The notes beneath the pieces are model-generated. The model searched no databases. It saw only the letters and a program-made list of their open reading frames with translations, and was not told the DNA's origin. Made by a program: the position numbers and the translations under genes. Below, one piece after another: positions 17,885-41,414 of a stretch of DNA of 64,000 bases. Positions within the stretch are counted from its first letter, which is position 1, and each line of letters opens with the position of its first letter. Origin of the DNA: Leucoraja erinacea (taxonomy: Eukaryota); NCBI RefSeq assembly GCF_028641065.1, contig NW_026576077.1, forward strand, positions 62,001 to 126,000, in the 5' to 3' direction.

Positions 17885-18487
17885 TCAGCCCACTAAGCTG
17901 TGACTACAGGACTGTGTGTAGGCAGGTGATTCCGCATCGTAGGTGTCCAGCAGTGGAGTGATCATCATGTACCCCGAGCAGTGACCCGACTGCAGGGAGC
18001 TCCAGCCGTTCTGGTAGATGTGAATGTCCTGAGTGGTCCTGGTCCCCACTCTGACCCTCACCTCCGGGAGGGACGAGAGCTCAGCTTGTGTCAATGAGTA
18101 GGTGGGCGACAGAGGTGGGTTCTGGAGCTGCTCCATGTAAGAGGGGGCGGGGGCATCCCCCGGGACCACCCGGCCCATCCCACACCTGGGGTCTGTGAAT
18201 GGTGGAGGTGGCGTCTCTGGAACCACCAGGTGCTCCTGGCAGAAGCCGCCCAGGTGAGTGTCCAGGTGGTTCTCTGACGGTGAGGTCTGGAAGTGGAAGC
18301 AGGAACCGGCAGGGTGGGTCTCCAGATTTCCCTGGACGGAGGGGGGCTGTAGTAGCTCGGAGAACGGCTGCTCCATCAGTGATCTCTGTCCCATCATCTC
18401 CTCACTGCACAGAGCAGAGCTGTGTTCATGGCCATGGATGTGGCACTTCACCAGGTCTGGCATCAGTCCCTGATCCAGAGAGAGAGG
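17885..18487 (-). CDS. NANOG-like homeobox gene B, terminal exon 4 (PLSLDQGLMPDL...SHSLVG*)
   Basis: Acceptor ttttccttgcag|, phase 0, 603 nt open to TGA; S/P/Q-rich C-terminus. Confidence 0.7.
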   Translation of the reverse strand, partial: PLSLDQGLMPDLVKCHIHGHEHSSALCSEEMMGQRSLMEQPFSELLQPPSVQGNLETHPAGSCFHFQTSPSENHLDTHLGGFCQEHLVVPETPPPPFTDPRCGMGRVVPGDAPAPSYMEQLQNPPLSPTYSLTQAELSSLPEVRVRVGTRTTQDIHIYQNGWSSLQSGHCSGYMMITPLLDTYDAESPAYTQSCSHSLVG

Positions 18488-18513
18488 CTGCAAGGAAAAG
18501 CCCAGCGTTACTG

Positions 18514-19285
18514 TGCTGCAGGTACAACCGCTCACACCTGTGGTGCAGGTACAACCGTGCACACTTGTGGTGCAGGTACAACCGCACACACCTGTGGTGC
18601 AGGTACAACCGCACACACCTGTGGTGCAGGTACAACCGCACACACCTGTGGTGCAGGTACAACCGCTCACACCTGTGGTGCAGGTACAACCGTGCACACT
18701 TGTGGTGCAAAAACAACCGCACACACCTGTGGTGCAGGTACAACCGCTCACACCTGTGGTGCAGGTACAACCGCACACACCTGTGGTGCAAGAACAGCCG
18801 CTCACACCTGTGGTGCAGGTACAACCGCACACACCTGTGGTGCAGGTACAACCGCTCACACCTGTGGTGCAGGTACAACCGTGCACACCTGTGGTGCAGG
18901 TACAACCGTGCACACTTGTGGTGCAGGTACAACCGCTCACACCTGTGGTGCAGGTACAGCCGCTCACACCTGTGGTGCAGGTACAACCGCTCACACCTGT
19001 GGTGCAGGTACAACCGCTCACACCTGTGGTGCAGATACAACCGCACACACCTGTGGTGCAGGTACAACCGCTCACACCTGTGGTGCAGGTACAACCGCAC
19101 ACACCTGTGGTGCAAAAACAACCGCTCACACCTGTGGTGCAGGTACAACCGCTCACACCTGTGGTGCAGGTACAACCGCTCACACCTGTGGTGCAGGTAT
19201 AACCGCACACACCTGTAGTGTAAAAACAACCACACACACCTGTGGTACAGGTACAACCGCTCACACCTGAGGTGCAGGTACAGTC
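18514..19285. repeat. 27-bp intronic minisatellite (~28 copies)
   Basis: Unit GTGGTGCAGGTACAACCGCTCACACCT; lies between the exon 3 donor (19346) and exon 4 acceptor (18488) of gene B. Confidence 0.95.
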
Positions 19286-19346
19286 GCGCACGGGGGGGAG
19301 GGGGAGGGGGGGGCAGAGCAGAGGGTGCAGGGGAGCGGTCAAGTAC

Positions 19347-19439
19347 CTGGCCGGAGAAGGGGCTGATGTCCGGTTCAGGCCAGCCCAGTGGGTGCTGGCG
19401 TTTCAGCTTCATCCTTCGATTCTGATACCATGTCTTGAC
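19347..19439 (-). CDS. Homeobox gene B exon 3 (VKTWYQNRRMKLKRQHPLGWPEPDISPFSGQ)
   Basis: gatttcag|GTC AAG ACA TGG TAT CAG AAT CGA AGG ATG AAG ... CAG|gtactt; 93 nt; homeodomain helix 3. Confidence 0.85.
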
Positions 19440-20699
19440 CTGAAATCAACATGAAGTGAACATTAAAAATTGCTTCCCCCCCCCCCAACACTGCCCCCTC
19501 CCCCCACAGCCCCTTACAACACACACATATATATATATACACACACACCTCCCCNNNNNNNNNNNNNNNNNNNNNNNNNNNNNNNNNNNNNNNNNNNNNN
19601 NNNNNNNNNNNNNNNNNNNNNNNNNNNNNNNNNNNNNNNNNNNNNNNNNNNNNNNNNNNNNNNNNNNNNNNNNNNNNNNNNNNNNNNNNNNNNNNNNNNN
19701 NNNNNNNNNNNNNNNNNNNNNNNNNNNNNNNNNNNNNNNNNNNNNNNNNNNNNNNNNNNNNNNNNNNNNNNNNNNNNNNNNNNNNNNNNNNNNNNNNNNN
19801 NNNNNNNNNNNNNNNNNNNNNNNNNNNNNNNNNNNNNNNNNNNNNNNNNNNNNNNNNNNNNNNNNNNNNNNNNNNNNNNNNNNNNNNNNNNNNNNNNNNN
19901 NNNNNNNNNNNNNNNNNNNNNNNNNNNCCCCTACAACACAACACACACACACACAGCCCCCCCCCACACACACATATATATATACACACACACACCTCCC
20001 CACATACACACACACCAGCCCCTACAACACACGCACACACANNNNNNNNNNNNNNNNNNNNNNNNNNNNNNNNNNNNNNNNNNNNNNNNNNNNNNNNNNN
20101 NNNNNNNNNNNNNNNNNNNNNNNNNNNNNNNNNNNNNNNNNNNNNNNNNNNNNNNNNNNNNNNNNNNNNNNNNNNNNNNNNNNNNNNNNNNNNNNNNNNN
20201 NNACATACACACACACAGTCCCCGTGTGAGAGGAGGAAGGAGAGAGAAAGAGGGGGGGGGGGGGGGGGTAGAGAGGGGGGGGGGAGAGAGGGGGGTGATA
20301 GAGGGGAGCAGAGTTACCCCCCCCCCACACACGTTATATATATACACACAGCCCCCGGGTGAGAGGAGGAAGGGGGGGTGGGGGGTATGTAAGAGGGGGG
20401 GGGTAGAGGGGGTAATAGAGGGGAGCAGAGTTACCCCCCCACACACACACCCTCCCCACACACACACAGCCCCCCACACACACAGCCCCCCACACAGTCC
20501 CCGGGTGAGAGGAGGAAGGGGGGGGGGGGGGTAGTAGAGGGGGGGGGGGGGAAGAGGGGGTGATAGAGGGGAGCAGAGTTACCCCCCCCACACACACACA
20601 TCCCCCCCGGGTGAGAGGGGGTAGAGAGAGAGGGGGGGGGGGGGGGGGTAGAGGGGTAATAGAGGGGAGCAGAGTTACCCCCCCCACACAACCACACAC

Positions 20700-20861
20700 C
20701 TGTTTTACAGTCGAGGCCCAGTGAGGCTGCGAGCTCCGCCCGTTCCCCGGGACTAAGGTATCGCTGCTGCCGGAACCGCTGCATCAGTTGCCGCTTCTGC
20801 TCCAGGCTGAAGACGGTCCGCCTGCGGCCACTCGGCCCGGCCCCTCGCTGCTGTCCCGCAC
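20700..20861 (-). CDS. Homeobox gene B exon 2 (..GRRRTVFSLEQKRQLMQRFRQQRYLSPGERAELAASLGLDCK[Q])
   Basis: Acceptor gggttcag|, homeodomain helices 1-2, donor cag|gtgtgt; one extra A (TGTAAAACAG) relative to the expected K43-Q44 end. Confidence 0.8.
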
Positions 20862-21674
20862 CTGAACCCACAGAGGCAACAGCGTCAGTCACACAGACCC
20901 TTCCGCCCCTCCGCCCGCGTCCTAGCCCACCCCGAGCCGGGCTAGGTTGAAAAACCGAGATTCTGCTGATGTATAGGATGTCGGTCAGGATGTCAACTCC
21001 AAGCCCCTCTCCTCACCCTCTCCCCCCTCTCCCTCCTCTCCCCCCCCCCCTCCTCCCCCCCCTCTCCTCTCCTCTCCCTCTCTCCCTCTCCTCCTCTCCC
21101 TCTCCTCTCTCCTCCTCCCTCCTCTCCCCCCCCCTCCTCTCCNNNNNNNNNNNNNNNNNNNNNNNNNNNNNNNNNNNNNNNNNNNNNNNNNNNNNNNNNN
21201 NNNNNNNNNNNNNNNNNNNNNNNNNNNNNNNNNNNNNNNNNNNNNNNNNNNNNNNNNNNNNNNNNNNNNNNNNNNNNNNNNNNNNNNNNNNNNNNNNNNN
21301 NNNNNNNNNNNNNNNNNNNNNNNNNNNNNNNNNNNNNNNNNNNNNNNNNNNNNNCCCCCTCTCTCCCCCTCTCCTCCCCTCCTCCCNNNNNNNNNNNNNN
21401 NNNNNNNNNNNNNNNNNNNNNNNNNNNNNNNNNNNNNNNNNNNNNNNNNNNNNNNNNNNNNNNNNNNNNNNNNNNNNNNNNNNNNNNNNNNNNNNNNNNN
21501 NNNNNNNNNNNNNNNNNNNNNNNNNNNNNNNNNNNNNNNNNNNNNNNNNNNNNNNNNNNNNNNNNNNNNNCCCCCCCCTCCTCTCCCTCCCCGCCCCGCG
21601 AGTTCCCGTGTTCAGCCGCCTAGAGTCGGCGCTTGACCGGGACTGGGGCCGGAGAGTCGCCGCTTCACACTGAC

Positions 21675-21887
21675 CGTGGCTCGAGTCCAGGTGCAGGTTG
21701 TCCCCGGGGCGGTGGTGGGGGGAGGGTGAGGGGTGGTGAGGGGGTGGGGGTGAGGGTGAGGGTTGGTGGGGAGGGGTGAGGGTGGGTGGGGAGGGGGTTG
21801 AGGAGGGGGTGAGGGTGGGTGCGGGGTCGGGCTGTTGTCCAGGTGTGCCGGGGACGGCAGCAGGTATTCCAGGTAAACCTCGTCCAT
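21675..21887 (-). CDS. Homeobox gene B probable exon 1 (MDEVYLEYLLPSP.. Pro/His-rich)
   Basis: Kozak gccaATGG ~40 nt downstream of a TATA box; donor cacg|gtcagt; phase off by 1 nt within a C-rich tract. Confidence 0.55.
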
Positions 21888-21928
21888 TGGCAGCGGGAGA
21901 CGATGAACCTGCTGCCCCGAGGCTGCGA

Positions 21929-21936
21929 CTTTTATA
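21929..21936 (-). promoter_or_regulatory. TATA box of homeobox gene B
   Basis: GGGTATAAAAG on the minus strand, upstream of the ATG at 21887. Confidence 0.6.
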
Positions 21937-22339
21937 CCCGGAGTGGGACTTGATAACGAGGTGTGAGACTGGGGGAGTCACTGAGTGACACAGCGTGGAA
22001 ACAGGCCCTTCGGCCCAACTGGCCCTTCCCTGCCCAACAATGTCCCAGCTACACTAGTCCCACCTGCTCATGTTTGGCCCATATCCCTCCACACATGTGT
22101 TTAAGAGGGAACTGCAGATGCTGGAGAATCGAAGGTTACACAAAAAAAAAAGCTGGAGAAACTCAGCGGGTGCAGCAGCATCTATGGAGCGAAGGAAATA
22201 TTTCCTTCGCTCCATAGATGCTGCTGCACCCGCTGAGTTTCTTCAGCTTTTTTTTGTGTAACCTCCCTCCACACCTGTCCTATCCATGTACCTGTCTAAC
22301 TGTTTCTTAAACATTGGGATAGTCCCAGTCTCAACTACC

Positions 22340-23335
22340 TCCTCTGGCAGGGAGGTTCTACTGCAGTTGTACAGGGTCTTGGTGAGACCACACCCGGAGT
22401 ATTGCGTACAGTTTTGGTCTCCTAATCTGAGGAAAGACATTCTTGCCATAGAGGATTTGAGTCTAGGAGCAGGGAGGTTCTACTGCAGTTGTACAGGGTC
22501 TTGGTGAGACCACACCTGGAGTATTGCGTACAGCTTTGGTCTCCTAATCTGAGGAAAGACATTCTTGCCATAGAGGATTTGAGTCTAGGAGCAGGGAGGT
22601 TCTACTGCAGTTGTACAGGGTCTTGGTGAGACCACACCTGGAGTATTGCGTACAGTTTTGGTCTCCTAATATGAGGAAAGACATTCTTGCCATAGAGGAT
22701 TTGGGTCTAGGAGCAGGGAGGTTCTACTGCAGTTGTACAGGGTCTTGGTGAGACCACACCTGGAGTATTGCGTACAGTTTTGGTCTCCTAATCTGAGGAA
22801 AGACATTCTTGCCATAGAGGGAGTACAGAGACGGTTCACCAGACTGATTCCTGGGATGTCAGGACTTTCTTATGAAGAAAGACTGGATAGACTCGGCTTG
22901 TACTCGCTAGAATTTAGGAGATTGAGGGGGGATCTTATAGAAACTTACAAAATTCTTAAGGGGTTGGACAGGCTAGATGCAGGAAGATTGTTCCTGATGT
23001 TGGGGAAGTCCAGGACAAGGGGTCACAGTTTAAGGATAAGGGGGAAATCTTTTAGGACCCGAGATGAGAAAAACATTTTTTTTTCACACAGAGAGTGGCG
23101 AATCTCTGGAACTCTCTGCCACAGAAGGTAGTTGAGGCCACACAGTTCATTGGCTATATTTAAGAGGGAGTTAGATGTGGCCCTTGTGGCTAAAGGGATC
23201 AGGGGGTATGGAGAGAAGGCAGGTATGGGATACTGAGTTGGATGATCAGCCATGATCATATTGAATGGCGAATGGTGCAGGCTCGAAGGGCCGAATGGGC
23301 TCTACTCCTGCACCTATTGTCTATGTTTCTATGTT
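22340..23335 (+). mobile_element. CR1-clade LINE fragment with internal 122-bp tandem multiplication
   Basis: Segment encoding [35 protein letters not shown] is repeated 4x before the normal 3' end. Confidence 0.85.
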
Positions 23336-24479
23336 CTGTGTGAAAAACTTGCCCCTCAGATTCCTATCAAATCTTTTCCCCTTCACCTTGAACCTCTATG
23401 CCTCTGTGGACCATGTAATAGAAGAAGAATGAGGCCATTCGGCCCATCATGTCTATTCCACCATTCAATCATGGCTGATCTGTCTGTCCTTCAACTTCAT
23501 TCTCCTGCCTTCTCCCCATAGCCTTTGACACGGTACACTCCCACAGTATCTGAGCTTACTTTCTCTCCCCCTCCCCCCTCCCCTTCTCCCTCTCCCTCTC
23601 TCCCTGCCTTCTCACTCTTGATGGAGTGGATGTGGAGAGGATGTTTCCACTAGTGGGAGAGTCTAGGACCAGAGGGCACAGCCTCACAATTAAAGGACGT
23701 TCCTTTAGGAAGGAGATGAGGAGGAATTTCTTTAGTCAGAGGGTGGTGAATCTGTGGGATTCTTTACCACAGATGGCTGTGGAGGCCACAAGTCAGTGGT
23801 ATATTTAAGGCAGAGATAGATAGATTCTTGATTAGTGCGGGTGTCAGGGGTTATGGGGAGAAGGCAGGAGAATGGGGTTAGGAGGGAGAGATAGATCAGC
23901 CCTGATTGAATGGCAGGGTAGATGGGCTGAATGGCCTAATTCTACTCCTATACCTCATGAACTCAGCGGGACAGGCAGCATCTCTGTAGAGAAGGAATGG
24001 GTCGAGGCCTGTCTTCAGACTCGACATATTCTTGTGCTTCTGCAAGTAAGAATGTTACCGTTCTGTAAGGGGTTGGACAGGCTAGATGCAGGAAGATTGT
24101 TCCCGATGTTGGGGAAGTCCAGGACAAGGGGTCACAGCTTAAGGATAAGGGGGAAATCCTTTAAAACCGAGATGAGAAGAACTTTTTTCACACAGAGAGT
24201 GGTGAATCTCTGGAACTCTCTGTCACAGAGGGTAGTTGAGGCCAGTTCATTGGCTATATTTAAGAGGGAGTTAGATGTGGCCCTTGTGGCTAAAGGGATC
24301 AGGGGGTATGGAGAGAAGGCAGGTACAGGATACTGAGTTGGATGATCAGCCATGATCATATTGAATGGCGGTGCAGGCTCGAAGGGCCGAATGGCCTCTA
24401 CTCCTGCACCTAATTTCTATGTTTCTATGTAATGGGACATTGACAATGAAACACAGTCGACTCTTGAAAAGCCCGCAGG

Positions 24480-24960
24480 TTTATTGACGTTATCAGCAAG
24501 TGATGTACAAAATCAGCGACTACTTTGAGCGCAGGCAGCTGTATGAGACACATCCACATCCCAGCAATCCAGTTGTTGCCTTCCTCCGAGGAGCATATTC
24601 TCCGGTGCGAGGGGAACATTCTCCACTGCCTGGCCTGCAGCAATGGGACCAGGATCTCTCTTCATCCACGCTCTCCACAGATCAGCTTCTTGACAGAAGA
24701 TGTTCTGGTTTCTGGAAGGAGTTTCTTCCCAGAGGCAATTCGGACTGTAAACGCCTATCTCACCAGGGACTAACTCTACTGAACGTTTTTCCTTCCATTA
24801 TTTATTATGTAAAAGAATATGTGTGTTATGATTGTGTTTATAATTTGTTTGGTTGTTTTGTTGTTTGTCTTTTGCACAAAAGTCCACGAGCATTGCCACT
24901 TTCATTTCACTGCACATCTCGTATGTGTATGTGACAAATAAACTTGACTTGACTTGACTT
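24480..24960 (+). mobile_element. Rex1/Babar-like LINE 3' fragment
   Basis: ..RSFFPEAIRTVN.. then AATAAA-(CTTGA)n tail; related copies at 39778-40230 (-) and a tail at ~15150-15293. Confidence 0.65.
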
Positions 24961-25705
24961 TCCTACAAATGGCGTTGAGAACTAGAGTTGCAAGGACATG
25001 TACACAGAGAGTTGTGAGTCTGTGGAATCCTCTGCCTCAGAGGGCGGTGGAGGCCGGTTCTCTGGATACTTTCAAGAGAGAGCTAGATCTCTTGGGATAG
25101 CGGAGTTAAGGGTTATGGAGTGAAAGCAGGAACGGGGATAATCAGCCATGATCACATTGAATGGCGGTGCAGGCTCGAAGGGCCGAATGGCCTCTACTCC
25201 TGCACCTATTGTCTATTGACTAGATGGTGTGAGCTACAGGGAGAGGTTGAGGTAGGCTGGGTCTCTATTCCTTGGAGCGCAGGAGGATGAGGGGAGATCT
25301 TATAGAGGTGTATAAAATCATGAGAGGAATAGATCGGGCAGAGTCTCTTGCCCAGAGTAGGGGAATCGAGGACCAGAGGACATGGGTTTAAGGGGAAGGG
25401 GAGAAGATTTAATAGGAATCTGAGGGGTAACTTTTCCACACAGAGGGTGGTGGGTGTATGGAACGAGCTGCCAGAGGAGGTAGTTGAGGCTGGGACTATC
25501 CCAACGTTTAAGAAACAGTTAGACAGGTACGTGGATGGGACAGGTTTGGAGGGATATGGACCAAGCGCAGGCAGGTGGGACTAGTGTGGGCAAGTTGGGC
25601 TGAAGGGCCTGTTTCCACACTGTATCACTCTGTGACGGAATCATATTGGGGGGGGTGGTGCAATCATTGCTCAACTACAGAATGTGTCGCTCTCTCCGGC
25701 CCTCT

Positions 25706-26404
25706 CTAGGAGAAACCCCTCCCCTCACACTGACCCCCAGCTGCCTGGTACCTCAGGAGTACGCTGCTCTGAGCCTCAGGCTGGGGCCCAGGGTGGAGGT
25801 GCCCTGTCACAGTGGCTCCAGGGTGGAGCCCGTTCCCGGAAGCTCCAGTGTGGAGATACCCAAACTGGGAAGCTTCGTGGTGGAGCCCAGCTCCGTAGTG
25901 GGGCCCAGTGCCTGGGGCTCTGTGCTGGAGCCCAGCTCCGTGCTGGAGCCCAGTGCCTGGGGCTCTGTGCTGGAGCCCATTGCCTGACGCTCGAGGGTGG
26001 AGATGCCCAGACTGGAGACTTCCATGGTGGAGGAGCCCAGCTCCGTGGTGGAGACCAGGCTGGGGAGCTCCATGGTAGAGCCCAGTACCAGAGGCTCCAG
26101 GATGGAGATGTCCAGACTGGGGAAAGGCTCGTGGCCTGAGGAACTGCTGGTCTGGGCTGCTGGACGTCACTGACTGTGGCCCCAGCTCAGGCTCGGGCTG
26201 GGAGGACAGGGCGATAGAGAACTTGACCGATCGGTTGGTGTATTGCAGGGCGCTCTTGATGAGGGTGGACTGCAGGCTGCCCATGGCTGGACACATGGAC
26301 TCGGGACACGGCCAGGCCTGGGCAGCTGATGGGCAGTGTTTGGGCAGCGGGTGGAACTGATGCTGCATATATTCTGACAGATTCCTGAAGGCCAAATGGT
26401 TACC
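25706..26404 (-). CDS. NANOG-like homeobox gene A, terminal exon 5 (GNHLAFRNL...GRGFS*)
   Basis: Acceptor gtgtttgcag|, phase 0, 699 nt open; contains GLHHGA-type His/Gly repeats. Confidence 0.75.
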   Translation of the reverse strand, partial: GNHLAFRNLSEYMQHQFHPLPKHCPSAAQAWPCPESMCPAMGSLQSTLIKSALQYTNRSVKFSIALSSQPEPELGPQSVTSSSPDQQFLRPRAFPQSGHLHPGASGTGLYHGAPQPGLHHGAGLLHHGSLQSGHLHPRASGNGLQHRAPGTGLQHGAGLQHRAPGTGPHYGAGLHHEASQFGYLHTGASGNGLHPGATVTGHLHPGPQPEAQSSVLLRYQAAGGQCEGRGFS

Positions 26405-27769
26405 CTGCAAACACACAAGAAGTTTCTGTAAGTCCAACACTAGACACACACACACACACACACCATAACTGTGGAGATGGTCAACAAGGCTAATCTTCAC
26501 CACATGTGCTGTCTATGTGGAGTTTGCACGATCTCCCTGTGAACACGTGGTTTTCCCCCCACACTCCAATGATGGTCTCCTAATCTGAGGAAAGACATTC
26601 TTGCCGTAGAGGATTTGAGTCTAGGAGCAGGGAGGTTGACAATGTCTCGTGAAGAATGTTCTATCCACAGATGGAGTATTTGGTCTCCTAATCTGAGGAA
26701 GGACATTCTTGCCATAGAGGGAGTACAGAGAAGGTTCACCAGACTGATTCCTGGGATGTCAGGACTTTCATATGAAGAAAGACTGGATAGACTCGGCTTG
26801 TACACGCTAGAATTTAGAAGATTGAGGGGGGATCTTATAGAAACTTACAAAGTTCTTAAGGGGTTGGACAGGCTAGATGCAGGAAGATTGTTCCCGATGT
26901 TGGGGAAGTCCAGTACAAGGGGCCACACACAGTTTAAGGATAAGGGGGAAATCTTTTAGGACCGAGATGAGAAAAACATTCTTCACACAGAAAGTGGTGA
27001 ATCTCTGGAATTCTCTGCCACAGAAGGTAGTTGAGGCCAGGCTATATTTAAGAGGGAGTTAGATGTGGCCCTTGTGGCTAAAGGGATCAGGGGGTATGGA
27101 GAGAAGGCAGGGATGGGATACTGAATTGGATGATCAGCCATGATGATATTGAATGGCGAATGGTGCAGGCTCGAAGGGCCGAATGGCCTCTACTCCTGCA
27201 CCAGTTGTCTATGTTTCTATGTTTGCAGGTTAATTGGCTTCTGTAAATTGTCCCCAGGTGTGTAGGACAGAACTAGTGTACAGGGATCGCTGGTCAGCAT
27301 GGACTCAGTGGGCTGAAGGGCCTGTTTTCACGTTGTATCTCTAAACTAACACATACGCTGGAGATTCAGAACGGGCTTATTCACAGATGACAGAGGGTGG
27401 TAGTGGAAGGACAAAATCCAGGGTGGACATCAGTGACCAGTGGAGAGAGAGAGGGAATGCCGGGGTTATTTGAATTTAGAGAAATCACTTTTCACACCAC
27501 TGTGTTGGAAGCTGATATACGAGATGCCTTTCCTCCAAATTCATAGCAGCCAATTCATCTACTAACCCGCAAGTCTTTGGAGTGTGGGAGGAAACTGGAG
27601 CACCCGGAGAAAACCCACACAGGTCACGGGGAGAGCATGCAAACTCTGCACAGACAGCACCCGAGGTCAGGATCGAACCTGGGTCTTTGGCGCTGTGAGG
27701 CAGCAGCTCTACCCTGTACATTGTTGATGGAGAGACCCATCCCAGCCGAGCCCAGGTACCCACACTCAC

Positions 27770-27871
27770 CTGAGTTGAGTCCGGCCGCAGGTAGCTGACC
27801 ACTGTGCTGTCGGTCGGGTCCTTCACGATCCGCTTGACCTTCATGCGTCGATTTTGGAACCAAGTCTTCAC
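27770..27871 (-). CDS. Homeobox gene A exon 4 (VKTWFQNRRMKVKRIVKDPTDSTVVSYLRPDSTQ)
   Basis: ttcctttcag|GTG AAG ACT TGG TTC CAA AAT ... CAG|gtgagt; 102 nt, phase 0/0. Confidence 0.9.
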
Positions 27872-29479
27872 CTGAAAGGAATAAATCCAGTTCATTATCA
27901 CCGTAGGTCTTTAAATTGCATTATATATAGGCACAGAAAGCTGGAGTAACTCAGCGGCACAGGCAGCATCTCTGGAGAGAAGGGATGGGTGAAGCTTCGG
28001 GTCAGGACCCTTCTTCAGGATCAACACCAAACGTCACTAGAATTTAGAAGATCTTATAGAAACAGTTTTGGTCTCCTAATCTGAGGAAAGACATTCTTGC
28101 CATAGAGGATTTGAGTCTAGGAGCAGGGAGGTTCTACTGCAGTTGTACAGGGTCTTGGTGAGACCACACCTGGAGTATTGCGTACAGTTTTGGTCTCCTA
28201 ATCTGAGAAAAGACATTATTGCCATAGAGGGAGTACAGAGAAGGTTCACCAGACTGATTCCTGGGATGTCAGGACTTTCATATGAAGAAAGACTGGATAG
28301 ACTCGGCTTGTACTCGCTAGAATTTAGAAGATTGAGGGGGGATCTTATAGAAACTTACAAAATTCTTAAGGGGTTGGACAGGCTAGATGCAGGAAGATTG
28401 TTCCCGATGTTGGGGAAGTCCAGAACAAGGGGCCACACACACAGTTTAAGGATAAGGGGGAAATCTTTTAGGACCGAGATGAGAAAAACATTTTTCACAC
28501 ACAGAGAGTGGTGAATCTGTGGAACTCTCTGCCACAGAAGGTAGTTGAGGCCACACAGTTCGTTGGCTATATTTAAGAGGGAGTTAGATGTGGCCCTTGT
28601 GGCTAAAGGGATCAGGGGGTATGGAGAGAAGGCAGGGATGGGATACTGAGTTGGATGATCAGCCATGATCATATTGAATGGTGGTGCAGGCTCGAAGGGC
28701 CGAATGGCCTCTACTCCTGCACCTATTTTCTATGTATCTATCAGCCATGATCATATTGAATGGCGGTGCAGGCTCGAAGGGCCGAATGGCCTCTACTCCT
28801 GCACCTATTTTCTATGTTTCTATCAGCCATGATGATATTGAATGGTGGTGCAAGCTCGAAGGGCTGAATGGCCTCTACTCCTGCACCTATTTTCTATGTT
28901 TCTATCAGCCATGATCATATTGAATGGTGGTGCAAGCTCGAAGGGCCGAATGGCCTCTACTCCTGCACCTATTTTCTATGTTTCTAACTCTCTTGACTTG
29001 ACTAGTGTTGGTCCACATGAGCAGGTAGGGTCAGCATGAGCAAGTTGGGCCGAAGGGCCTGTCTATATGCTGCATGACTGATAACTAGTATGGCTGGGTG
29101 ACTACAAGAATGTTCCCGGGGCTGCAGTTTGTGGCTGATTAGCAAAACAAAGAGCTCAGCGGTCGGTCCCAGTGGGTCTGGCAGGGCAGAGGTGTAAGCA
29201 TGGACAAGGGGGCCTGGGGTGAGACACTGTCCACAGTTGCAGTTCGCAGACTATTCACACGTCCTCAAGGTGGGCTGCATAACAAAGGATTCTGCAGGTA
29301 CAAGCAGCCAGGTACAGATTCCAAGGCCAGGCACAACAATGCTCAGAAATGCAACACCTCCAAGGTGTGAGATCACCCTGGGCAGCTGGAACTGCCTGTG
29401 TCACCGGAACAGGGTCGTTAGAGCACTCTAGCGCTCTGGAGTTTGATAGTGTTACCCCAACATGCACCCCAAAAATACA

Positions 29480-29950
29480 CAGAGTGCTGGGAGCAACTCA
29501 GTGGGTCAGCAGCATCTGTGGAGAACATGGATAGGTGACGTTTCACAGAGTGCTGGAGTAACTCAGCGGGTCAGGCAGCATCTGTGGAGAACATGGATAG
29601 GTGACGTTTCACAGAGTGCTGGAGTAACTCAGCGAGTCAGGCAGCATCTATGGAGCTAAGGAAATAGGCAACGTTTCAGGCCGAAACCCGTAAGGGTTTC
29701 GGCCCGAAACGTTGCCTATTTCCAGAAGGATTTCGGCCCGAAACATTGCCTATTTCCTTAGCTCCATAGATGCTGCTGCACCATAACTGAGTGGGTCAGG
29801 CAGCATCTGTGGAGAACATGGATAGGTGACGTTTCACAGAGTGCTGGAGTAACTCAGCGGGTGGGTCAGGCAGCATCTGTGGAGAACATGGATAGGTGAC
29901 GTTTCACAGAGTGCTGGAGTAACTCAGCGGGTCAGGCAGCATCTCTGATG
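29480..29950 (-). repeat. 66-bp minisatellite (inverted) with a nested palindromic element
   Basis: Reverse complement of the 3089-3615 unit; inverted repeat at ~29635-29780. Confidence 0.85.
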
Positions 29951-31854
29951 AACATGGAGTAACTCATAGAAACATAGAACATAGCAAATAGGTGCAGGAT
30001 TAGAGGCCATTCGGCCCTTCGAGCCTGCACCGCCATTCAATATGATCATGGCTGATCATCCAACTCAGTATCCTGTACCTGCCTTCTCTCCATACCCACT
30101 GATCCCTTTAGACACAAGGGCCACATCCAACACCCTCTTAAATATAGCCAATGAACTGTGGCCTCAACTACCTTCTGTGGCAGAGAGTTCCACAGATTCA
30201 CCACTCTCTCTGTGAAAAATGTTTTTCTCATCTCGGTCCTAAAGGATTCCCCCTTATCCTTAAACTGTGACCCCTTGTTCTGGACTTCCCCAACATCGGG
30301 AACAATCTTCCTGCATCTAGCCTGTCCAACCCCTTAAGAATTTTGTAAGTTTCTATAAGATCCCCCCTCAACCTTCTAAATTCCAGCGAGTACAAGCCGA
30401 GTCTATCCAGTCTTTCTTCATATGAAAGTCCTGACATCCCAGGAATCAGTCTGGTGAACCTTCTCTGTACTCCCTCTATGGCAATAATGTCTTTCCTCAG
30501 ATTAGGAGACCAAAACTGTACGCAATACTCCAGGTGTGGTCTCACCAAGACCCTGTACAACTGCAGTAGAACCTCCCTGCTCCTAGACTCAAATCCTCTA
30601 TGGCAAGAATGTCTTTCCTCAGATTAGGAGACCAAAACTGTACGCAATACTCCTAACCCCATTCTCCTGCCTTCTCCCCATAACCCCAGACACCCGTACT
30701 AATCAAGAATCTATCTATGCCTGCTTTAAAAACATCCACTGGTGTGGCCTCTGCAAATAATTCCACAGATTCACCACCATCTTGAGTAAAGAAATTTCTC
30801 CTCATCTCCTTCCGAAAAGAATATCCTTTAATTCTGAGGTTGTGACCTCTGGTCCTAGACTCTCCCATTAGTGGAAACATCCTCTCCACATCCACTCTAT
30901 CCAACCCTTCCACTATTTGCTACGTTTCAATGAGGTCCCCGCTCATTCTTCTAAACTCCAGCGAGTACAGGCCCAGTGCCGACAAACGCTCATCGTATGT
31001 TAACCCAGTATCCCTAAACTAAACTAAGATAGACTTTAGATTGTGTGGAAACAGGCCCTTCTGCCCACCGAGTCCATGCCGACCATCGATCACCCCGTAC
31101 ACTCACACTATCCTACACACACTGCGGACAATTCACACTTTACAGAAACCTGTACGTCTTTGGAGTGTGGGAGGAAACTGGATCATCCGGGGAAAAACCC
31201 ACGCAGGTCACAGGGAGACCGTGCAAACTCCACACAGACAGCTCCCGTAATCAGGATCGAACCTGGGTCTGTGATGTTGTGAGGCAGCAGCTCTACCCGC
31301 TGCACCACCGTGCCACCCGAGATATTAGTTTTTAGTTTAACCATATAACAATTACAGCACGGAAACAGGCCATCTCGGCCCTACAAGTCCGTGCCGAACA
31401 ACTTTTTCCCTTTGTCCCACCTGCCTGCACTCATACCATAACCCTCCATTCCCTTCTCATCCATATGCCTATCCAATTTATTTTTAAATGATACCAACGA
31501 ACCTGCCTCCACCACTTCCACTGGAAGCTCATTCCACACCGCCACCACTCTCTGAGTAAAGAAGTTCCCCCTCATGTTACCCCTAAACTTCTGTCCCTTA
31601 ATTCTGAAGTCATGTCCTCTTGTTTGAATCTTCCCTATTCTCAAAGGGAAAAGCTTGTCCACGTCAACTCTGTCTATCCCTCTCATCATTTTAAAGACCT
31701 CTATCAAGTCCCCCTTAACCTTCTGCGCTCCAGAGAATAAAGACCTAACTTGTTCAACCTTTCTCTTAGTTTAGTTTAGTTTATTGTCACGTGTATCAAG
31801 GAGGGAAGATAATGATGAAGATATGTGGCCCCAACAGCCTATGTGTGAGTAGCA

Positions 31855-34800
31855 GCCCCCCCCCCCCCGACCTCCTTCACCCCCCCACCTCCACCTTCCC
31901 CCCCCCCACCTTCACCCCCCCACCTCCCCTCCCCCACCTTCACCTCCACCTTCACCTTCACTCCCCCACCCCCCACCCACCCCCCCACCTCAGATTCAGA
32001 TTCAGATTCAATTTTAATTGTCATTGTCAGTGTACCGTACAGCGACAAGCGAACCACACCTCCACCTTCACCTTCACCCCCCCCACCTCCACCTCCCCCT
32101 TCACCCCCCCACCTCCACTCCCACCCCACCTTCACCCCCCCACCTCCACCTTCACCCCCCCACCTCAGATTCAGATTCAATTTTAATTGTCATTGTCAGT
32201 GTACAGTAGAGACAAGCGAACCACACCTCCACCTTCACCTTCACCCCCCCACCTCCACCCCCCACCTCCACCTCCACCCCCCCCCCACCCTCCACCCCCC
32301 ACCTCCACCCCCCCACCTCCACCTCCACCCCCCCCCCCCACCTCCACCTTCACCCCCCCCCACCCCACCCACCCCCCCCACCTCCACCTTCACCCCCCCC
32401 CCTTCCACCTCCCCTTCTCCCCCCCCACCTCCACCCCCCCACCCACCCCCACCACCCCCACCTTCACCTTCCCCCCCCCACCCCCACCTCCACCTCCACC
32501 CCCCCCACCTCCACCCCCCCACCTCCACCTTCACTCCACCTCCACCTTCACCTCCCCCCCCCACCTCCACCTCCACCTTCCACCCCCACCTCCACCTCCA
32601 CACCCACCCCCCACCCTCCACCCCCACCTCCACCTTCACCCCCCCACCTCCACCTTCACCCCCACCCCCACCTTCCACCATTCACCCCCCCCTCCCACCT
32701 CCACCTTCACCCCCCCACCTCCACCCACACCTCCACCTCACCCCCCCCACCCCCCCCCCCCAGAGGGAACCCCACCCCCCACTCCACAACCACCTTCCCC
32801 CCCCACCCCACCTCCACCCCCCCACCTCACCCCTCAACCCCCACCTCCACCTTCACCCCCACCCCACCTCCACCTTCACCCCCCACCTCCACCGTCCACC
32901 TTCACCCACCCCCCTCCACCTCCCCCCCACCACCACCCACCCTCCCCCCCCCCACCTCCACCTCCACCCCCCACCCCCCTTCACCCCCCCCACCTCCACC
33001 CCCCACCTCCACCCCACCTCCCCTTCCCCCCCCCACCTCCACCCACCCCCCCCACCCCCACCCTCCCCCCTCCACCTTCCCCCCCCCCACCTCCACCTTC
33101 ACCCCCCTCCCCTCCACCCCCACCCCCCACCCCACCTCACCCCCCCACCCCCCCTCCCACCCCCTCCACCTCCACCCCCCCCCCCACCCACCCCCCCCCC
33201 TCCACCCCTCCCACCTCCACCCCCCCCCACCCCCACCTCCCCCCCCCCACCCCCACCTTCCCCCCCTCAACCCCCCCCTCCACCTCCACACCCCCACCTC
33301 CACCTCCACACCCCCCCCCCCCCCCCCCTCACCCCCCTCACCCCCCTCTCCCCCCTCCACCCCCCCCCCCCACCCCACCTCCACCCCCCCCCACCTCCAC
33401 CCCCCCCTCCCCCCCCCACCCCACCCCCCCACCCCCCACCCCACCTTCCCCCCCCACCCCCCCCTCCACCTCCACCCCCCCCCCCACCTCCACCTCCACC
33501 CCCCCACCTCCACCTCCACCTCCCCCACCCCACCCCCACCTCCACCTCCACCCCACCCACCTCCCTTCACCTTCCACCCCCCACCTCCCCTCCACTCCAC
33601 CCTCCACCTCCACCCTCCACNNNNNNNNNNNNNNNNNNNNNNNNNNNNNNNNNNNNNNNNNNNNNNNNNNNNNNNNNNNNNNNNNNNNNNNNNNNNNNNN
33701 NNNNNNNNNNNNNNNNNNNNNNNNNNNNNNNNNNNNNNNNNNNNNNNNNNNNNNNNNNNNNNNNNNNNNNNNNNNNNNNNNNNNNNNNNNNNNNNNNNNN
33801 NNNNNNNNNNNNNNNNNCCCCCCACCTCCACCTTCACCTCCCCCCCACCCCCTCCACCTCCACCTCACACCCCCACTCCCCCCCCACCCCCACCTCCACC
33901 TCCACCCCCCCCCCTCCACACCTCACCCCCCCCCCCCCACCTCCCACCCCACCACCTCCACCTTCACCCCCTCCACCCCCCACCTCCACCTTCACCCCCA
34001 CCCTCCACCTCACCCACCCCCCCCACCCCCCCCCCACTCAAACCCCTCTTCCCCCCCCCCACCTCCACCCCCACCCCCTCCCCCCCCCCCACCCACCCAC
34101 CCCCCCCCCTACCCCCCCCTCCCCCCACCCCCCCCCCCCCCCCCCCACCCCCCCCCCCCTCCACCCCCACCCCACCTCCACCTCCACCTCCACACCCCCC
34201 CCCCCCACCTTCACCCCCCACCTTCACCCCCCCCACCTCCACCTCCACCTTCACCCCCCCCACCTCCACCGTTCCCCCCCCCCACCTCCACCTTCACCCC
34301 CCCACCTCCCCCTCCACCTCCACCTCCACCTTCACCCCCCACCTTCCACCCCCCCACCCCCACCCCCACCTTCACCCCCCCCCCACCTCCACCTCCACCC
34401 CCCCCCACCTCCACCTTCACCCCCCACCACCACCTCCACCTCCACCCCCCCACCTCCACACCTTCACCCCCACCTTCACCCCCCCCCCCCACCCTCCACC
34501 TCACCCCCCCCCCCTCCACCTCCACCCCCCCCACCTCCCTTCACCCCCCCACCTCCACCTTCACCCCCCCACCTCCACCTCCACCTTCACCCCCCCACCC
34601 TCCACCTCCACCTCCACCCCCCCACCTCCACCTTCACCCCCCCACCTCCACCTCCACCTTCACCCCCCCCACCTCCACCTCCACCTTCACCTTCACCTGT
34701 CACCTCCACCTCCACCTCCACCTTCACCCCCCCCCACCTCCACCTTCACCCCCCCCCCCCCACCTCCACCTCCACCTTCACCTTCACCTTCACCTCCACC

Positions 34801-34920
34801 TCCACCTTCACTCCCCCACTCCCACCTTCACCCCCCCCCCCCACCTCCACCTCCACCTTCCCACCCCCCACCTCCACCTTCACCCCCCACCTCCACCTTC
34901 ACCACCACCACCTCCCCCTA
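31855..34920. repeat. ~3-kb C-rich low-complexity array (CCACCT/CCACCTT/poly-C) in intron 3 of gene A
   Basis: Direct reading; includes an N gap; source of the spurious 913-aa poly-Pro ORF. Confidence 0.95.
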
Positions 34921-34921
34921 C

Positions 34922-35196
34922 CTGTTGACTGCTCATCCCCAGCACATGTCCCAGCTCCTGCCGCTCGGATGCGGAGACGTAACGCTGCAGGTGGAAGCGT
35001 TGCTGCAGGACTCGCAGCTGGTCGCCGCTGAAGGTGGTGCGCCCCTTGGTCCTCTTCGACACCGTCTGCTGCTGCTGCTGCTGCTGCCCCGTGTTGGAGC
35101 CGTTCTCCTTGGCCGCGTCCACCCAGGATTCCGGCCTCGCCCCGAGCCAACGCAAACCGTTCCAGGAGTCGGCTCCCGACACCAAGTTGTGGGCGT
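34922..35196 (-). CDS. Homeobox gene A exon 3 (..Q7 TVSKRTKGRTTFSGDQLRVLQQRFHLQRYVSASERQELGHVLGMSSQQ)
   Basis: cacctgcag|AC ... CAG|gtaggg; 275 nt, phase 1 to 0; homeodomain residues 1-44. Confidence 0.9.
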
Positions 35197-36121
35197 CTGC
35201 AGGTGACAAGATACAGTGGGTAACGGCACACACAACACACAACGGGCAGAGCTGCTGCCTACAGCGCCAGAGACCCTGGTTCCATCCTGACTACGGGTAC
35301 TGTCTGTTGGGGAAGTCCAGAACAAGGGGCCACACACAGTTTTAGTATGTCTATTAGGACCGAGATGAGAATTTTTTTCCCCCACACATAGAGTGGTGAA
35401 TCTGTGGAATTCTCTGCCACAGAAGGTAGTTGAGGCCATATTTAAGAGGGATCTTATAGAAACTTACAAAATTCTTAAGGGGTTGGACAGGCTAGATGCA
35501 GGAAGATTGTTCCCGATGTTGGGGAAGTCCAGAACTAGGGGTCACAGTTTAAAGATAAGAGGGAAGTCTTTTAGGACCGAGATGAGAAAAAAAAAATTTA
35601 CACAGAGAGTGGTGAATCTGTGGAATTCTCTGCCACAGAAGGTAGTTGAGGTCATATTTAAGAGGGAGTTAGATGTGGCCCTTGTGGCTAAAGGTATCAG
35701 GGGTATGGAGAGAAGGCAGGTACAGGATACTGAGTTGGATGATCAGCCATGATCATATTGAATGGCGAATGGTGCAGGCTCGAAGGGCCGAATGGCCTCT
35801 AATCCTGCACCTATTTTCTATGCTTGATTATAGTCTGATTTCCATACATTAAATTTATATTCAATACATATATTTAAGAGGGAGTTAGATGTGGCCCTTG
35901 TGGCTAAAGGGGTCAGGGGGTATGGAGAGAAGGCAGGGATGGGATACTGAGTTGGATGATCAGCCATGATCATATTGAATGGTGGTGCAGGCTCGAAGGG
36001 CCGAATGGGTTAGTGTAGATGGGGGCATGTTGGCCAGTGTGGGTAAGTTGGGCCTGTTTCCGCACTGTATCACTACAAGCTCCTTTCTAAGGGATTCCCG
36101 CTGTGCCCGATCCACACTTAC

Positions 36122-36256
36122 TGTCTTCATGCTGAGAACACGAGGCTATGGTGCCATCCTCAGTCTGGTCGGCCTCAGCTACGACAGGCTCACGGGACGA
36201 TGGCTTCGGGTACGACTCAGGCCAGCAGTCCATGGTGTTGCCCAGCATGGAGGTGT
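36122..36256 (-). CDS. Homeobox gene A exon 2 (DTSMLGNTMDCWPESYPK...QHED)
   Basis: ttttcctctccctggcag| ... A|gtaagt; 135 nt, phase 1/1, joins exons 1 and 3 in frame. Confidence 0.75.
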
Positions 36257-38241
36257 CTGCCAGGGAGAGGAAAAACAATCACGTCACAACCCCCATACTG
36301 CCTCTTAGTCTCTTCAACCTCAGAGGCTGGGCGGAGGGAGATTAGATAGAAGTAAATAAAATGAGAGGCATTGAAAGGGTAGAGAGTCACAACCTTTTAT
36401 CCCCAGGGTGGCCATGTCCAACACTGTCCGACGTCTAAGAAATTATTTAAGAAGGAACTGCAGATGCTGGAAAATCAAATGTACACAAAAATGCTGGAGA
36501 AACTCAGCAGGTGCAGCAGCATCTATGGAGCGAAGGAAGTAGGCTCCCTTCTATGGCTAGTGTAGACTTCCATCGCTCCATAGATGCTGCTGCATCTGCT
36601 GAGTTTCTCCAGCATTATTGTATACCTGACGTCTAAGAAATGGTTAGACAGGTACATGGATGGGGCAGGTGTGGAGGGATATGGGCCAAACCCGGGCAAG
36701 TGGGACTAGTGTAGCTGGGACATGTTGGCCGGTGTGGGCAAGTTGGGCTGAAGGGCCTGTTTCCACACTGTATCACTCTATGACTAGAGGGCACAGCTAT
36801 AAGGTGAGAGAGGGAGATTTAATAAGATCCCTAACCCAGTAGCAGAATTAGGCCATTAAACCCAGTGAGTCTACTCTGCCAATGAATTGTGGCTGATCAA
36901 TCTCACATAGAAACATAGACAATAGGTGCAGGAGTAGAGGCCATTCGGCCCTTCGAGCCTGCACCATTCGCCATTCAATATGATCATGGCTGATCATCCA
37001 ACTCAGTATCCCGTACCTGCCTTCTCTCCATACCCCCTGATCCCCTTGGCCACAAGGCCCACATCTAACTCCCTCTTAAATATAGCCAATGAACTGTGGC
37101 CTCAACTACCCTCTGTGGCAGAGAGTTCCAGAGATTCACCACTCTCTGTGTGAAAAAAGTTCTTCTCATCTCAGTTTTAAAGGATTTCCCCCTTATCCTT
37201 AAGCTGTGACCCCTTGTCCTGGACTTCCCCAACATTGGGAGCAATCTTCCTGCATCTAGCCTGTCCAACCCCTTAAGAATTTTGTAAGTTTCTATAAGAT
37301 CCCCTCTCAGTCTCCTAAATTCTAGAGAGTATAAACCAAGTCTATCCAGTCTTTCTTCATAAAACAGTCCTGACATCCCAAGAATCAGTCTGGTGAACCT
37401 TCTCTGCACTCCCTCTATGGCAATAATGTCCTTCTTCAGATTAGGAGACCAAAACTGAATGCAATACAGGTGTGGTCTCACCAAGACCCTGTACAACTGC
37501 AGTAGAACCTCCCTGCTCCTATACTCAAATCCTTTTGCGATTTCACCATCCTAACCCCATCATCTGGACACCTCCCTATAACCTTTGACACCTGTACTAA
37601 TCAAAAATTATTAATATATAATCATTAATATTGATTAATCACTGCCCAGAGTAGGGGAATCGAGGACCAGAGGACATAGGTTTAAGGTGAGGGGGGAAAA
37701 GATTTAATAGGAATCTGAGGGGTAACTTTTCCACACAGAGCACGGTGGGTGTATGGAACGAGCTGCCGGAGGAGGTAGTTGAGGCTGGGACTATCCCAAC
37801 GTTTAAGAAACAGTTGGACAGGTACATGGATAGGACAGGAGTAGAGAGATATGGGCAAAGCGCAGGCAGGTGGGACTAGTGTAGCTGGGACATGTTGGCC
37901 GGCATGGGCAAGTTGGGCCGAAGGGCCTGTTTCCACACTGTATCAGTCTATGATAGGCGACACAAAGTCTTGAACAGACCAAAGCCACATGGTGAGTGAC
38001 CCTATGATCATTTAGATATGGAGAGAGACCCCACAAAGTGCTGGAGTAACTCAGCGGGTCAGGCAGCATCTCTGGAGAACTTGGAGGTCACCTATTCAAT
38101 TTTCTCCACACATTCTGCCTGTCCCGCTGAGTTACTCCAGCACATTGTGTCTATTCTCGGTGTAACGCAGCACCTGCAGTTCCTATACGTATTCCAACCT
38201 CAGTCGCTGGACAGATCCATCTAATCTCAGGTGAACCTTAC

Positions 38242-38431
38242 CTGCCGACCAAGCCTCGCTGTCTGCAGGTTGCCCCGGGCCGCGCCGCTCCTCGCCGGGT
38301 AGCGGATGGGGAGGGAAGGGGCAGAGAGCTCGCTCTGCCCCCTCGACCTGTCCCTGCGGGAAATAGAGGTCCTCCCTTCGGGGACTGAGTCCCGCCGTCT
38401 CGGTCTGCAAGTCTAGGAATCGCTGCGCCAT
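38242..38431 (-). CDS. Homeobox gene A exon 1 (MAQRFLDLQTETAG...SEAWSA)
   Basis: agcATGG start, 190 nt, donor G|gtaagg in phase 1; the five exons sum to 1401 nt (466 aa + stop). Confidence 0.75.
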
Positions 38432-40379
38432 GCTGGGACCTCCGTGCAGTCTAGTCCTGGCTTACTCACTCACTCACACAGCGCGCCTCGAACCAGCAAC
38501 CGGGCTGAGAAATAGGCGTTAATAGGCGCTATTGCAATGGAAATTTGCCACCTGACCCCTCCACCCCCACCCTGAGCCCAATCAGAAACTCACACCAATG
38601 CCAACAAAAGGCCGAATGGGAAATTAGCAACTTAAATTTCCAGCGCGTTAAATTCAGAAATTCATAAGTGATAGGAGCAGGATCAGGCCGTTCGGCCCAG
38701 TTGTACAGGGTCTTGGTGAGACCACACCTGGAGTATTGCGTACAGTTTTGGTCTCCAAATCTGAGGAAGGACATTATTGCCATAGAGGGAGTGCAGAGAC
38801 GGTTCACCAGACTGATTCCTGGGATGTCAGGACTGTCTTATGAAGAAAGACTGGATAGACTTGGTTTATACTCTCTAGAATTTAGAAGATTGAGAGGGGA
38901 TCTTATAGAAACTTACAAAATTCTTAAGGGGTTGGACAGGCTAGATGCAGGTAGATTGTTCCCGATGTTAGGGAAGTCCAGGACAAGGGGTCACAGCTTA
39001 AGGATAATGGGGAAATCCTTTAAAACCGAGATGAGAAGAACTTTTTTCACGCAGAGAGTGGTGAATCTCTGGAACTCTGCCACAGAGGGTAGTTGAGGCC
39101 AGTTCATTGGCTATATTTAAGAGGGAGTTAGATGCGGCCCTTGTGGCTAAGGGGATCAGGGGGTATGGAGAGAAGGCAGGTACGGGATACTGAGTTGGAT
39201 GATCAGCCATGATCATATTGAATGGCGGTGCAGGCTCGAAGGGCCGAATGGCCTACTCCTGCACCTAATTTCTATGTTTCTATGTTTCTATCAAGTCTAC
39301 TTCGCCATTCAATCATGGCTGGTCTATCTCTCCCTCCTAACTCTCCTGCCTTCTCCCCATAACCCCTGACACCCGCACTAATCAAAAATCTATCTATCTC
39401 TGCCTTAAAAATACCCAATGACTTGTGGCCTCCACAGCCGTCTGTGTGGCAATGAATTCCACAGATTCACCACCCTCTGGCTAAATAAATTCCTCCTCAT
39501 CTCCATCCCAAAGGAACGTCCTTTTATTCTGAGGCTGTGCCCTCTGGTCCTAGACTCTCCCACCAGTGCAAACATCCTCTCCACATCCACTCCATCCAGG
39601 CCTTTCACTGTTCTGTACGTTTCAATGAGGTCCCCTCCTCATTCTTCTAAACTCCAGCGAGTACAGGCCCAATGCCGACAGATGCTCATCATAGGTTAAC
39701 CCACTCATTCCTGGGATCACTGTCGTAAACCTCCTCTGGACCCTCCCCAGGGCCAGCACATACAGGAGGTGCTTGAAGTCAAGTCAAGTCAAGTCAAGTT
39801 TATTTGTCACATACACATACGAGATGTGCAGTGAAATGAAAGTGGCAATGCTCGCGGACTTTTGTGCAAAAGACAAACAACAAAACAACCAAACAAATTA
39901 TAAACACAATCATAACACACATAATCTTTTACATAATAAATAATGGAAGGAAAAACGTTCAGTAGAGTTAGTCCCTGGTGAGAAAGGCGTTTACAGTCCG
40001 AATTGCCTCTGGGAAGAAACTCCTTCTCAACCTCTCCGTTCTCACCGCATGGCAACGGACCGTAGCAGCTGGAACAGTCCGTTGTAGGGGTGGAAGGGGT
40101 CTCTCATGATTTTATTTGCTCTGGAGTTGCACCTCCTGTTGTATAGTTCCTGCAGGGGGGTGAGTGAAGTTCCCATAGTGCGTTTGTTCGGCCGAACGCA
40201 CTACTCTCTGCAGAGCCTTCTTGTCTTTGGCAGAGCAATTCCTACACCACCAGAGCCAGGCACAATCCATTCCTACAACCAATATTCTACATAGGGGACA
40301 AACTCCAAAGAAGCAGCGCCGGACCAGAGGATCGAACCCGCGACAACGCCACCGCCAGGTTGGGGGTAGAGGGGCCGAA

Positions 40380-41400: not shown

Positions 41401-41414
41401 GAGGAGGAGGGGGC

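Follow-up and report, generated by a model that had tools for sequence, protein, structure and literature searches.

Our data suggest that the little skate, Leucoraja erinacea, carries two linked homeobox genes of the NANOG family, one of which (gene B) is likely the NANOG orthologue and the other (gene A) an old and divergent tandem paralogue; we give this reading a probability of roughly 0.6. Both genes lie on the minus strand, head to tail and 4 kb apart, in a window of 64,000 nucleotides (nt) that covers positions 62,001 to 126,000 of contig NW_026576077.1 (assembly GCF_028641065.1), a small and gap-rich scaffold of 234,080 bp; all coordinates below are positions in this window. A first-pass annotation of the window had described two spliced minus-strand genes and quoted the two halves of each homeodomain, and both pieces were found as quoted, in the list of open reading frames (ORFs) as well as by direct reading. 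The B-type homeodomain is probably the closest elasmobranch counterpart of the homeodomain of bony-vertebrate NANOG, and because K43, P28, and Q60 are common to the B-type and NANOG, we regard gene B as the probable NANOG counterpart, as far as this can be judged from sequence. Gene A would represent a second, elasmobranch-wide lineage that arose by tandem duplication before the shark-ray split; this lineage is set apart by a more divergent homeodomain, one additional exon upstream, and a C-terminal motif of its own.

To map the exons of both genes, we searched the window by tblastn with orthologues from sharks and rays and read the splice sites. In each gene, the splice sites place a phase-0 intron between homeodomain residues 44 and 45, and the intron is followed by a short exon (102 nt in gene A and 93 nt in gene B) that ends soon after the homeodomain. 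A short exon behind the homeodomain exon is the NANOG type of layout and is probably specific to NANOG. The long terminal exons that had been claimed for both genes were recovered by tblastn with the orthologues at 26404-25706 (gene A) and 18487-17885 (gene B). Five of five N gaps in the exon maps fall in introns (intron 1 and intron 2 of gene B and intron 3 of gene A), and no exon adjoins a gap, the smallest distance between exon and gap being 100 nt. How long the introns are, and where the 940-nt piece with exon 2 of gene B is placed, depends on the scaffolding.

Gene A is intact, with five coding exons and 466 codons, counted exon by exon; all five have open frames, and the phases agree at each junction. 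The four coding exons of the first-pass annotation have to be corrected to five, the additional one lying at 36256-36122. Exon 1 (38242-38431) starts with an ATG at 38431 and comprises 63 codons plus 1 nt in front of the donor CGGCAG/gtaagg; it is matched in tblastn by residues 1 to 62 of the A-type proteins of Hypanus, Mobula, and Pristis, and its translation is found inside the RefSeq model XP_055522015.1. Exon 2 (36122-36256; 135 nt, phase 1 to phase 1) is supported by its splice sites, by its presence in the RefSeq model, and by a weak tblastn match to the A-type proteins of Hypanus and Pristis. Exon 3 (34922-35196) encodes a polyglutamine stretch and homeodomain residues 1 to 44, ends with the phase-0 donor CAACAG/gtaggg after Q44 at 34922, and gives an E value of 2.6e-27 with the A-type protein of Pristis in tblastn. 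Furthermore, in an exhaustive protein search, this homeodomain exon (34922-35197) was 100% identical to XP_055522015.1, an "uncharacterized protein" of Leucoraja erinacea. Exon 4 (27770-27871; 102 nt) encodes homeodomain residues 45 to 60 and 18 further residues, is bounded by ag and gtgagt, is part of a RefSeq model, and is found by tblastn. Exon 5 (25706-26404) comprises 232 codons and the stop codon (9.1e-25 to the A-type protein of Pristis in tblastn) and contains the conserved motif QST.IKSALQYTN.SV.FS as well as a His/Gly-rich repeat. RefSeq breaks gene A into two "uncharacterized" models, XP_055522015.1, which joins exons 1 to 3 to a false tail, and XP_055522014.1, in which exons 4 and 5 follow a false start.

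The two halves correspond to LOC129716162 and LOC129716161, and the break coincides with the 7-kb intron, in which an N gap is located. The same intron contains about 3 kb of G/C-skewed low-complexity sequence (32 to 35 kb; GC content of 0.61 to 0.66 and a GC skew down to −0.96). In the last exon, the segment from 25780 to 26130 is a coding repeat (periods of 18, 27, 45, and 105 in Tandem Repeats Finder) that yields the Gly/His-rich stretch, with an aromatic residue or His every 7 to 9 residues; the A-type orthologue of Pristiophorus has a repeat of its own, HLHQGPSRLE, at the same place.

Gene B was modeled with four exons. Exon 1 (21671-21887) starts with an ATG at 21887, has a TATAAAA box about 45 nt upstream of it, contains a Pro-rich stretch, and encodes the N terminus MDEVYLEYL, which resembles the starts of the B-type proteins of Carcharodon and Heptranchias. 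Its donor A/gtgtga (phase 1) replaced an earlier choice, ACG/gtcagt (phase 0), on phase grounds only. Exon 2 (20700-20861) encodes homeodomain residues 1 to 43 and a broken codon 44; it matches the B-type proteins of Chiloscyllium (71%) and Pristis (67%) in tblastn and has 162 nt where an open frame would have 161. The exon ends with GAC TGT AAA ACA G/gt and thus runs one base beyond what the phase-0 acceptor needs. Because the junction of the homeodomain exons reads CKQ/VKTW in 7/7 B-type orthologues, we place the surplus base in the run of four A at 20703-20706, where the orthologues have CKQ. The phase-0 intron at residues 44/45 had been claimed for both genes, and as a layout it is indeed present in both, but the bracketed Q in the quoted homeodomain had hidden the surplus base of gene B. 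Exon 3 (19347-19439; 93 nt), found by tblastn, encodes homeodomain residues 45 to 60 and 15 further residues. Exon 4 (17885-18487) comprises 200 codons and the stop codon, is open throughout, and matches the B-type proteins of Hypanus (4.6e-22, with the same stop position) and S. canicula (1.4e-19) in tblastn; a word-index protein search with this exon gave no match.

The long ORFs at 18.4 to 19.4 kb are not part of gene B. They stem from a 27-nt minisatellite in intron 3 (18511-19282; 28.6 copies with a 90% match), which corrects an earlier finding. Since the period of the minisatellite is a multiple of three, several frames stay open, and spurious ORFs of 229 to 485 amino acids arise on both strands. 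No part of the orthologues corresponds to this segment in tblastn.

The surplus base raises the question of whether gene B is functional in the little skate. We consider an assembly indel more likely than a true loss, given that exons 1, 3, and 4 of gene B are open and conserved, including the last exon with its 200 codons. That gene B is a real pseudogene, in which a single inserted base cuts the protein short ahead of helix 3 and leaves gene A as the sole functional copy, is less probable and nevertheless a serious possibility. The assembly has four A where the frame needs three, and the canonical donor CAG/gtgtgt gives phase 1, in conflict with the phase-0 acceptor. In addition, no B-type protein of Leucoraja is present among the 31 matches to a B-type query, in which seven other species are found; this absence fits a pseudogene and an assembly error alike. 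Against a pseudogene speak the open exons 1, 3, and 4 and the last exon, which is as shark-like as the Hypanus copy and has the same end point: it is identical to the shark proteins at 49 to 64 of about 181 positions, compared to 56 to 76 of about 200 for Hypanus, and is not more diverged. Moreover, use of a weak donor located 2 nt further downstream would bring the reading frame back, at the expense of one added residue.

Both types are widespread in sharks and rays. A-type proteins were found in 10 elasmobranchs (the little skate, both Scyliorhinus species, Chiloscyllium punctatum, Pristiophorus, Rhincodon, Stegostoma, Pristis, Mobula, and Hypanus) and B-type proteins in 7 species (Pristis, Chiloscyllium, Hypanus, Heptranchias, both Scyliorhinus species, and Carcharodon), to which a fragment from Chiloscyllium plagiosum has to be added. 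In 5/5 species in which both were found, the A-type and the B-type gene are on contigs of identical size, which argues for linkage and not for adjacency. The distance between RefSeq accessions was tried as a proxy for adjacency and dropped, the differences ranging from 24 to 2453. Since sharks as well as batoids have both types, the duplication is older than the shark-batoid split; the first-pass annotation had called it old from the divergence of the pair. That annotation had counted 33 identical residues of 54 between the two homeodomains, a value that holds once gene B is credited with Q44; an exon-wise count gives an identity of 20/39 (positions 5 to 43) plus 12/14 (positions 45 to 58), or 32/53. 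The RefSeq names of the orthologues are inconsistent and include Dlx4a-, Hox-B4-, GBX-1-, Hox-A3a-, vent1-, bagpipe-, antennapedia-, DLX-5-, ceh-31-, and NANOG-like. In Chiloscyllium punctatum, the A-type and the B-type protein are each represented by two equally long RefSeq entries, all of them on one 93.8-Mb sequence; these may be isoforms or further local duplications.

The assignment to the NANOG family is based on a maximum-likelihood (ML) tree of 56 homeodomains and 60 columns, with 8 A-type, 7 B-type, and 6 NANOG rows (Alligator sinensis NANOG-like, Pitta, Esox lucius, Umbra, Dallia, and one further teleost) and the outgroups returned by the searches; the skate genes are represented by their shark and ray orthologues. 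The A-type, the B-type, and bony-vertebrate NANOG form a clade with a support of 98/97, and teleost ved, two VENTX-like proteins, BSX, BARX/BARH, HMX, TLX, and the NK families fall outside it. Within the clade, the B-type groups with NANOG (97/24). A topology with A+B as sister to NANOG has a log-likelihood (lnL) 4.7 above that of the free-search tree and a p value of 0.68 in the approximately unbiased (AU) test, and grouping of the A-type with NANOG gives a p-AU of 0.545. Hence, tree and AU tests leave the branching order of A-type, B-type, and NANOG undecided.

The homeodomain residues are consistent with this clade. E17, whose loss had been noted before, is present in 0/21 of the A-type, B-type, and NANOG rows versus 34/35 outgroup rows. 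K43, P28, and Q60 are found in 7/7, 6/7, and 7/7 of the B-type rows, in 6/6 NANOG rows each, and in 1/35, 1/35, and 3/35 of the other rows. Taking loss of E17 together with P28, K43, Q60, T47, Q50, and M54 as defining for NANOG, a set drawn from our own alignment and not a curated definition, the B-type has all of these features; the A-type shares no more than the E17 loss and T47/Q50/M54, and carries A28, Q43, and L60 instead. The residues typical of VENTX and ved (E17 and Y25-L26-G27) are not seen: both types lack E17 and have S or T at position 27. When single-domain matches to solved structures are compared, human NANOG ranks first for an A-type protein (61.3 bits) and, narrowly, for a B-type protein (65.3 bits), followed in both cases by a BarH-like homeodomain (52.9 and 63.2 bits, respectively); searches of solved structures with single exons did not discriminate between families. 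In the protein atlas, the clusters closest to the B-type include those of NANOG. Matches to teleost ved had raised the possibility that gene A is an elasmobranch ved, which was dropped after the tree and the residue counts.

The neighborhood of the pair was described in the first-pass annotation as HES7, a tRNA-Leu(TAG), and RNF167. The tRNA-Leu(TAG) gene was confirmed on the plus strand at 15882-15963, 1.9 kb downstream of gene B. Residues 267 to 302 of the B-type model of Pristis pectinata, XP_051900735.1, are a translation of the antisense tRNA-Leu (94% match to window positions 15875-15982), and from this tail it follows that the tRNA-Leu gene follows closely behind the B-type gene in Pristis as well. 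As part of the sawfish protein, these last 36 residues, annotated as an end exon, are a model error. Of HES7, there is a HES-like basic helix-loop-helix (bHLH) fragment of 36 residues on the plus strand (12069-12176), which covers the basic region and helix 1 and adjoins an N gap; a WRPW motif, a helix-2 motif, or further HES exons were not found in the region from 9 to 16 kb, and Pfam gave no HLH match for the piece. The piece (region 11900-12180) follows directly on the gap and has four extra residues in the basic region. RNF167 is represented by three plus-strand exons of a PA-domain E3 ligase of the RNF13/RNF167 type (58722-62280; about 58722-58844, 60362-60449, and 62188-62280), the PA domain having a Pfam E value of 0.043, below the cut-off. 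RNF13 remains an alternative to RNF167 for these exons, which do not distinguish the two, and a search of the PDB with the PA exon gave no match. Pro/Ser-rich, low-complexity long ORFs at 40273-42544 and 62300-64000 lie in GC-rich tracts (GC content of 0.67 to 0.71) and are probably simple repeats and not genes.

The genomic site leads to a different view of the origin of the pair, put forward in the first-pass annotation, in which the two genes are a whole-genome-duplication sister (ohnologue) of NANOG. Cartilaginous fishes would have retained this sister at a 17p13-type site, and bony vertebrates would have lost it; the 12p13-type copy would then have disappeared from cartilaginous fishes. 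The human regions 12p13 and 17p13 are paralogous. Consistent with such an origin, the pair sits between the HES-like bHLH piece plus tRNA-Leu(TAG) and the RNF13/167-like exons, away from the known neighbors of NANOG, and since the adjacency of the B-type gene and tRNA-Leu recurs in Pristis, this linkage is not a misassembly of the skate. If the neighbors are true 17p13 orthologues, a chance translocation to a 17p13-type region is unlikely, and the tree permits A+B as a sister clade of NANOG (lnL 4.7 higher; p-AU of 0.68). However, the neighbors consist of one 36-residue bHLH piece without WRPW and a PA domain with an E value of 0.043, so that the orthology to HES7 and RNF167 is only putative, and the scaffold of 234 kb is full of gaps. 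The residues K43, P28, and Q60 fit simple orthology of gene B and NANOG as well, and we know of no lineage that has both copies. According to the main text of a 2014 survey, nanog lies by TM9SF1-IPO4 in actinopterygians and by SLC2A3-AICDA in sarcopterygians, and it has moved at least once within bony fishes (PMC3894937). A third location alone is weak evidence, because the site of NANOG already differs between these two groups. In addition, the main text of a 2020 paper derives NANOG from a tandem duplicate of VENTX, which points to another ancestral site (PMC7190326). The tree cannot separate an orthologue that moved from a sister copy with reciprocal loss. A related scenario is that the A/B tandem duplication is older than the split of cartilaginous and bony fishes and that the A-type is a member of the NANOG family that was lost in bony vertebrates. 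Taken together, we regard these two scenarios as unlikely. If the sister copy were real, NANOG would have been present on the ancestral chromosome before the vertebrate genome duplications, and two lineages of jawed vertebrates would have kept opposite copies.

Several observations weigh against two NANOG-family genes with gene B as the likely orthologue of NANOG. The ML tree is without human or Xenopus VENTX, vertebrate BSX, vertebrate BARX, and cyclostome rows and has only six NANOG rows. AU tests reject none of the groupings of A+B with VENTX-like proteins (p = 0.165), BARX/BARH (p = 0.142), or BSX (p = 0.0925). The mean identity of the A-type to NANOG is 31.3 of 60 residues compared to 32.2 for BSX, so that NANOG is not singled out, and in the protein atlas the A-type is near the VAX2 and ved clusters and not near NANOG. 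With the first 44 homeodomain residues of gene B, the best solved match is DLX5, and NANOG is ranked low. Protein searches with A-type and B-type queries gave no holocephalan relative among their matches, and neither SLC2A3-AICDA nor TM9SF1-IPO4 neighbors were seen in the ORF lists of the window, which were not searched by name. Finally, gene B may be truly broken.

That A-type and B-type are not NANOG at all and belong to a fast-evolving elasmobranch family of NKL genes, derived from VENTX/ved, BSX, or BARX and drawn to NANOG by long-branch attraction through shared loss of residues, would agree with the surviving placements in the AU tests, with an A-type identity to BSX and to NK2/3/4 rows that equals or exceeds that to NANOG, with Y49 of the B-type as in BARX/BARH, with the atlas result for the A-type, and with the widely varying RefSeq names of the orthologues; we consider it improbable, since the best tree supports A+B+NANOG with 98/97 and the constrained alternatives are 12.8 to 14.4 lnL units worse, VENTX-like rows have E17 and G27, of which A and B have neither, K43, P28, and Q60 are common to B and NANOG, and the short exon behind the homeodomain exon is of the NANOG type. 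The phylogeny that the first-pass annotation had proposed as a check thus gave the NANOG grouping in the best tree and left groupings with VENTX-like, BSX, and BARX/BARH unrejected. In the same way, the claim that the genes are NANOG-like and not VENTX, BSX, or BARX is borne out by the best tree, but not by the AU tests, nor for gene A by identity or the atlas.

As members of the NANOG family, both proteins would act as sequence-specific transcription factors via a Q50 homeodomain with a NANOG-like helix 3 (T47, Q50, N51, and M54). By analogy with NANOG, both genes may be expected to be expressed in the early embryo or in the germ line.

NANOG is a core pluripotency factor, the origin of which is debated. 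The main text of the 2014 survey reports no clear NANOG in chondrichthyans (PMC3894937). In the 2020 paper, an elephant-shark NANOG served as a query, and the family is taken to have arisen in the ancestor of vertebrates (PMC7190326); hence, an origin of NANOG before the jawed vertebrates, as it had been put forward for the pair, is already in print and not new. In the literature, we found no main-text account of two elasmobranch lineages of the NANOG family, of their synteny, or of the HES7-side site; the supplements of PMC7190326 (fig. S1 and table S1) and PMC3894937 (Files S1 and S2) may hold one. What our analysis adds is that sharks and rays carry two ancient, linked lineages of the NANOG family, in a third genomic setting for this family. 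The orthologues have Dlx-, Hox-, GBX-, vent-, bagpipe-, or ceh-31-like names in RefSeq, and a consistent annotation of the set is now possible; moreover, the two natural proteins can serve to test how much of NANOG function is ancestral. If the HES7-side site is a paralogue of 12p13, it bears on whether NANOG arose beside VENTX or elsewhere. We regard the present result as an advance at the level of annotation that leaves the evolutionary question open.

The known system closest to the skate pair is NANOG of bony vertebrates. It falls in the same clade (98/97), has lost E17, has T47/Q50/M54, and shares the 44/45 intron and the short next exon with both genes, and P28, K43, and Q60 with the B-type; the frequent tandem duplicates in the NANOG family are a further parallel (main text of PMC3894937). 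In contrast to bony-vertebrate NANOG, the skate pair has neighbors other than SLC2A3-AICDA and TM9SF1-IPO4, the B-type has Y49 and C42, and the A-type differs by A28, S42, Q43, and L60 as well as by a fifth exon and a C-terminal motif of its own. The C-terminal Trp repeat is a feature of mammalian NANOG and is not known to be universal in non-mammalian NANOG. A Trp-repeat region is absent from both last exons; gene B has no repeat there, and the His/Gly-rich repeat of gene A is reminiscent of the mammalian Trp repeat but not homologous to it. VENTX, vox, vent, and ved, which the main text of PMC7190326 unites with NANOG in a VENTX-NANOG family, are also of the NKL class and have T47, Q50, and M54, and teleost ved is among the best non-elasmobranch matches of an A-type protein, at about 40% coverage; unlike A and B, the VENTX-like proteins keep E17 and have G27, and the A+B+NANOG clade does not include them. 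BSX, BARX, and BARHL have a comparable raw identity to A and B, a BarH-like protein is the next-best solved match, and Y49 of BARX/BARH recurs in the B-type, whereas these families lie outside the clade in the best tree and keep E17 and the acidic residue 42.

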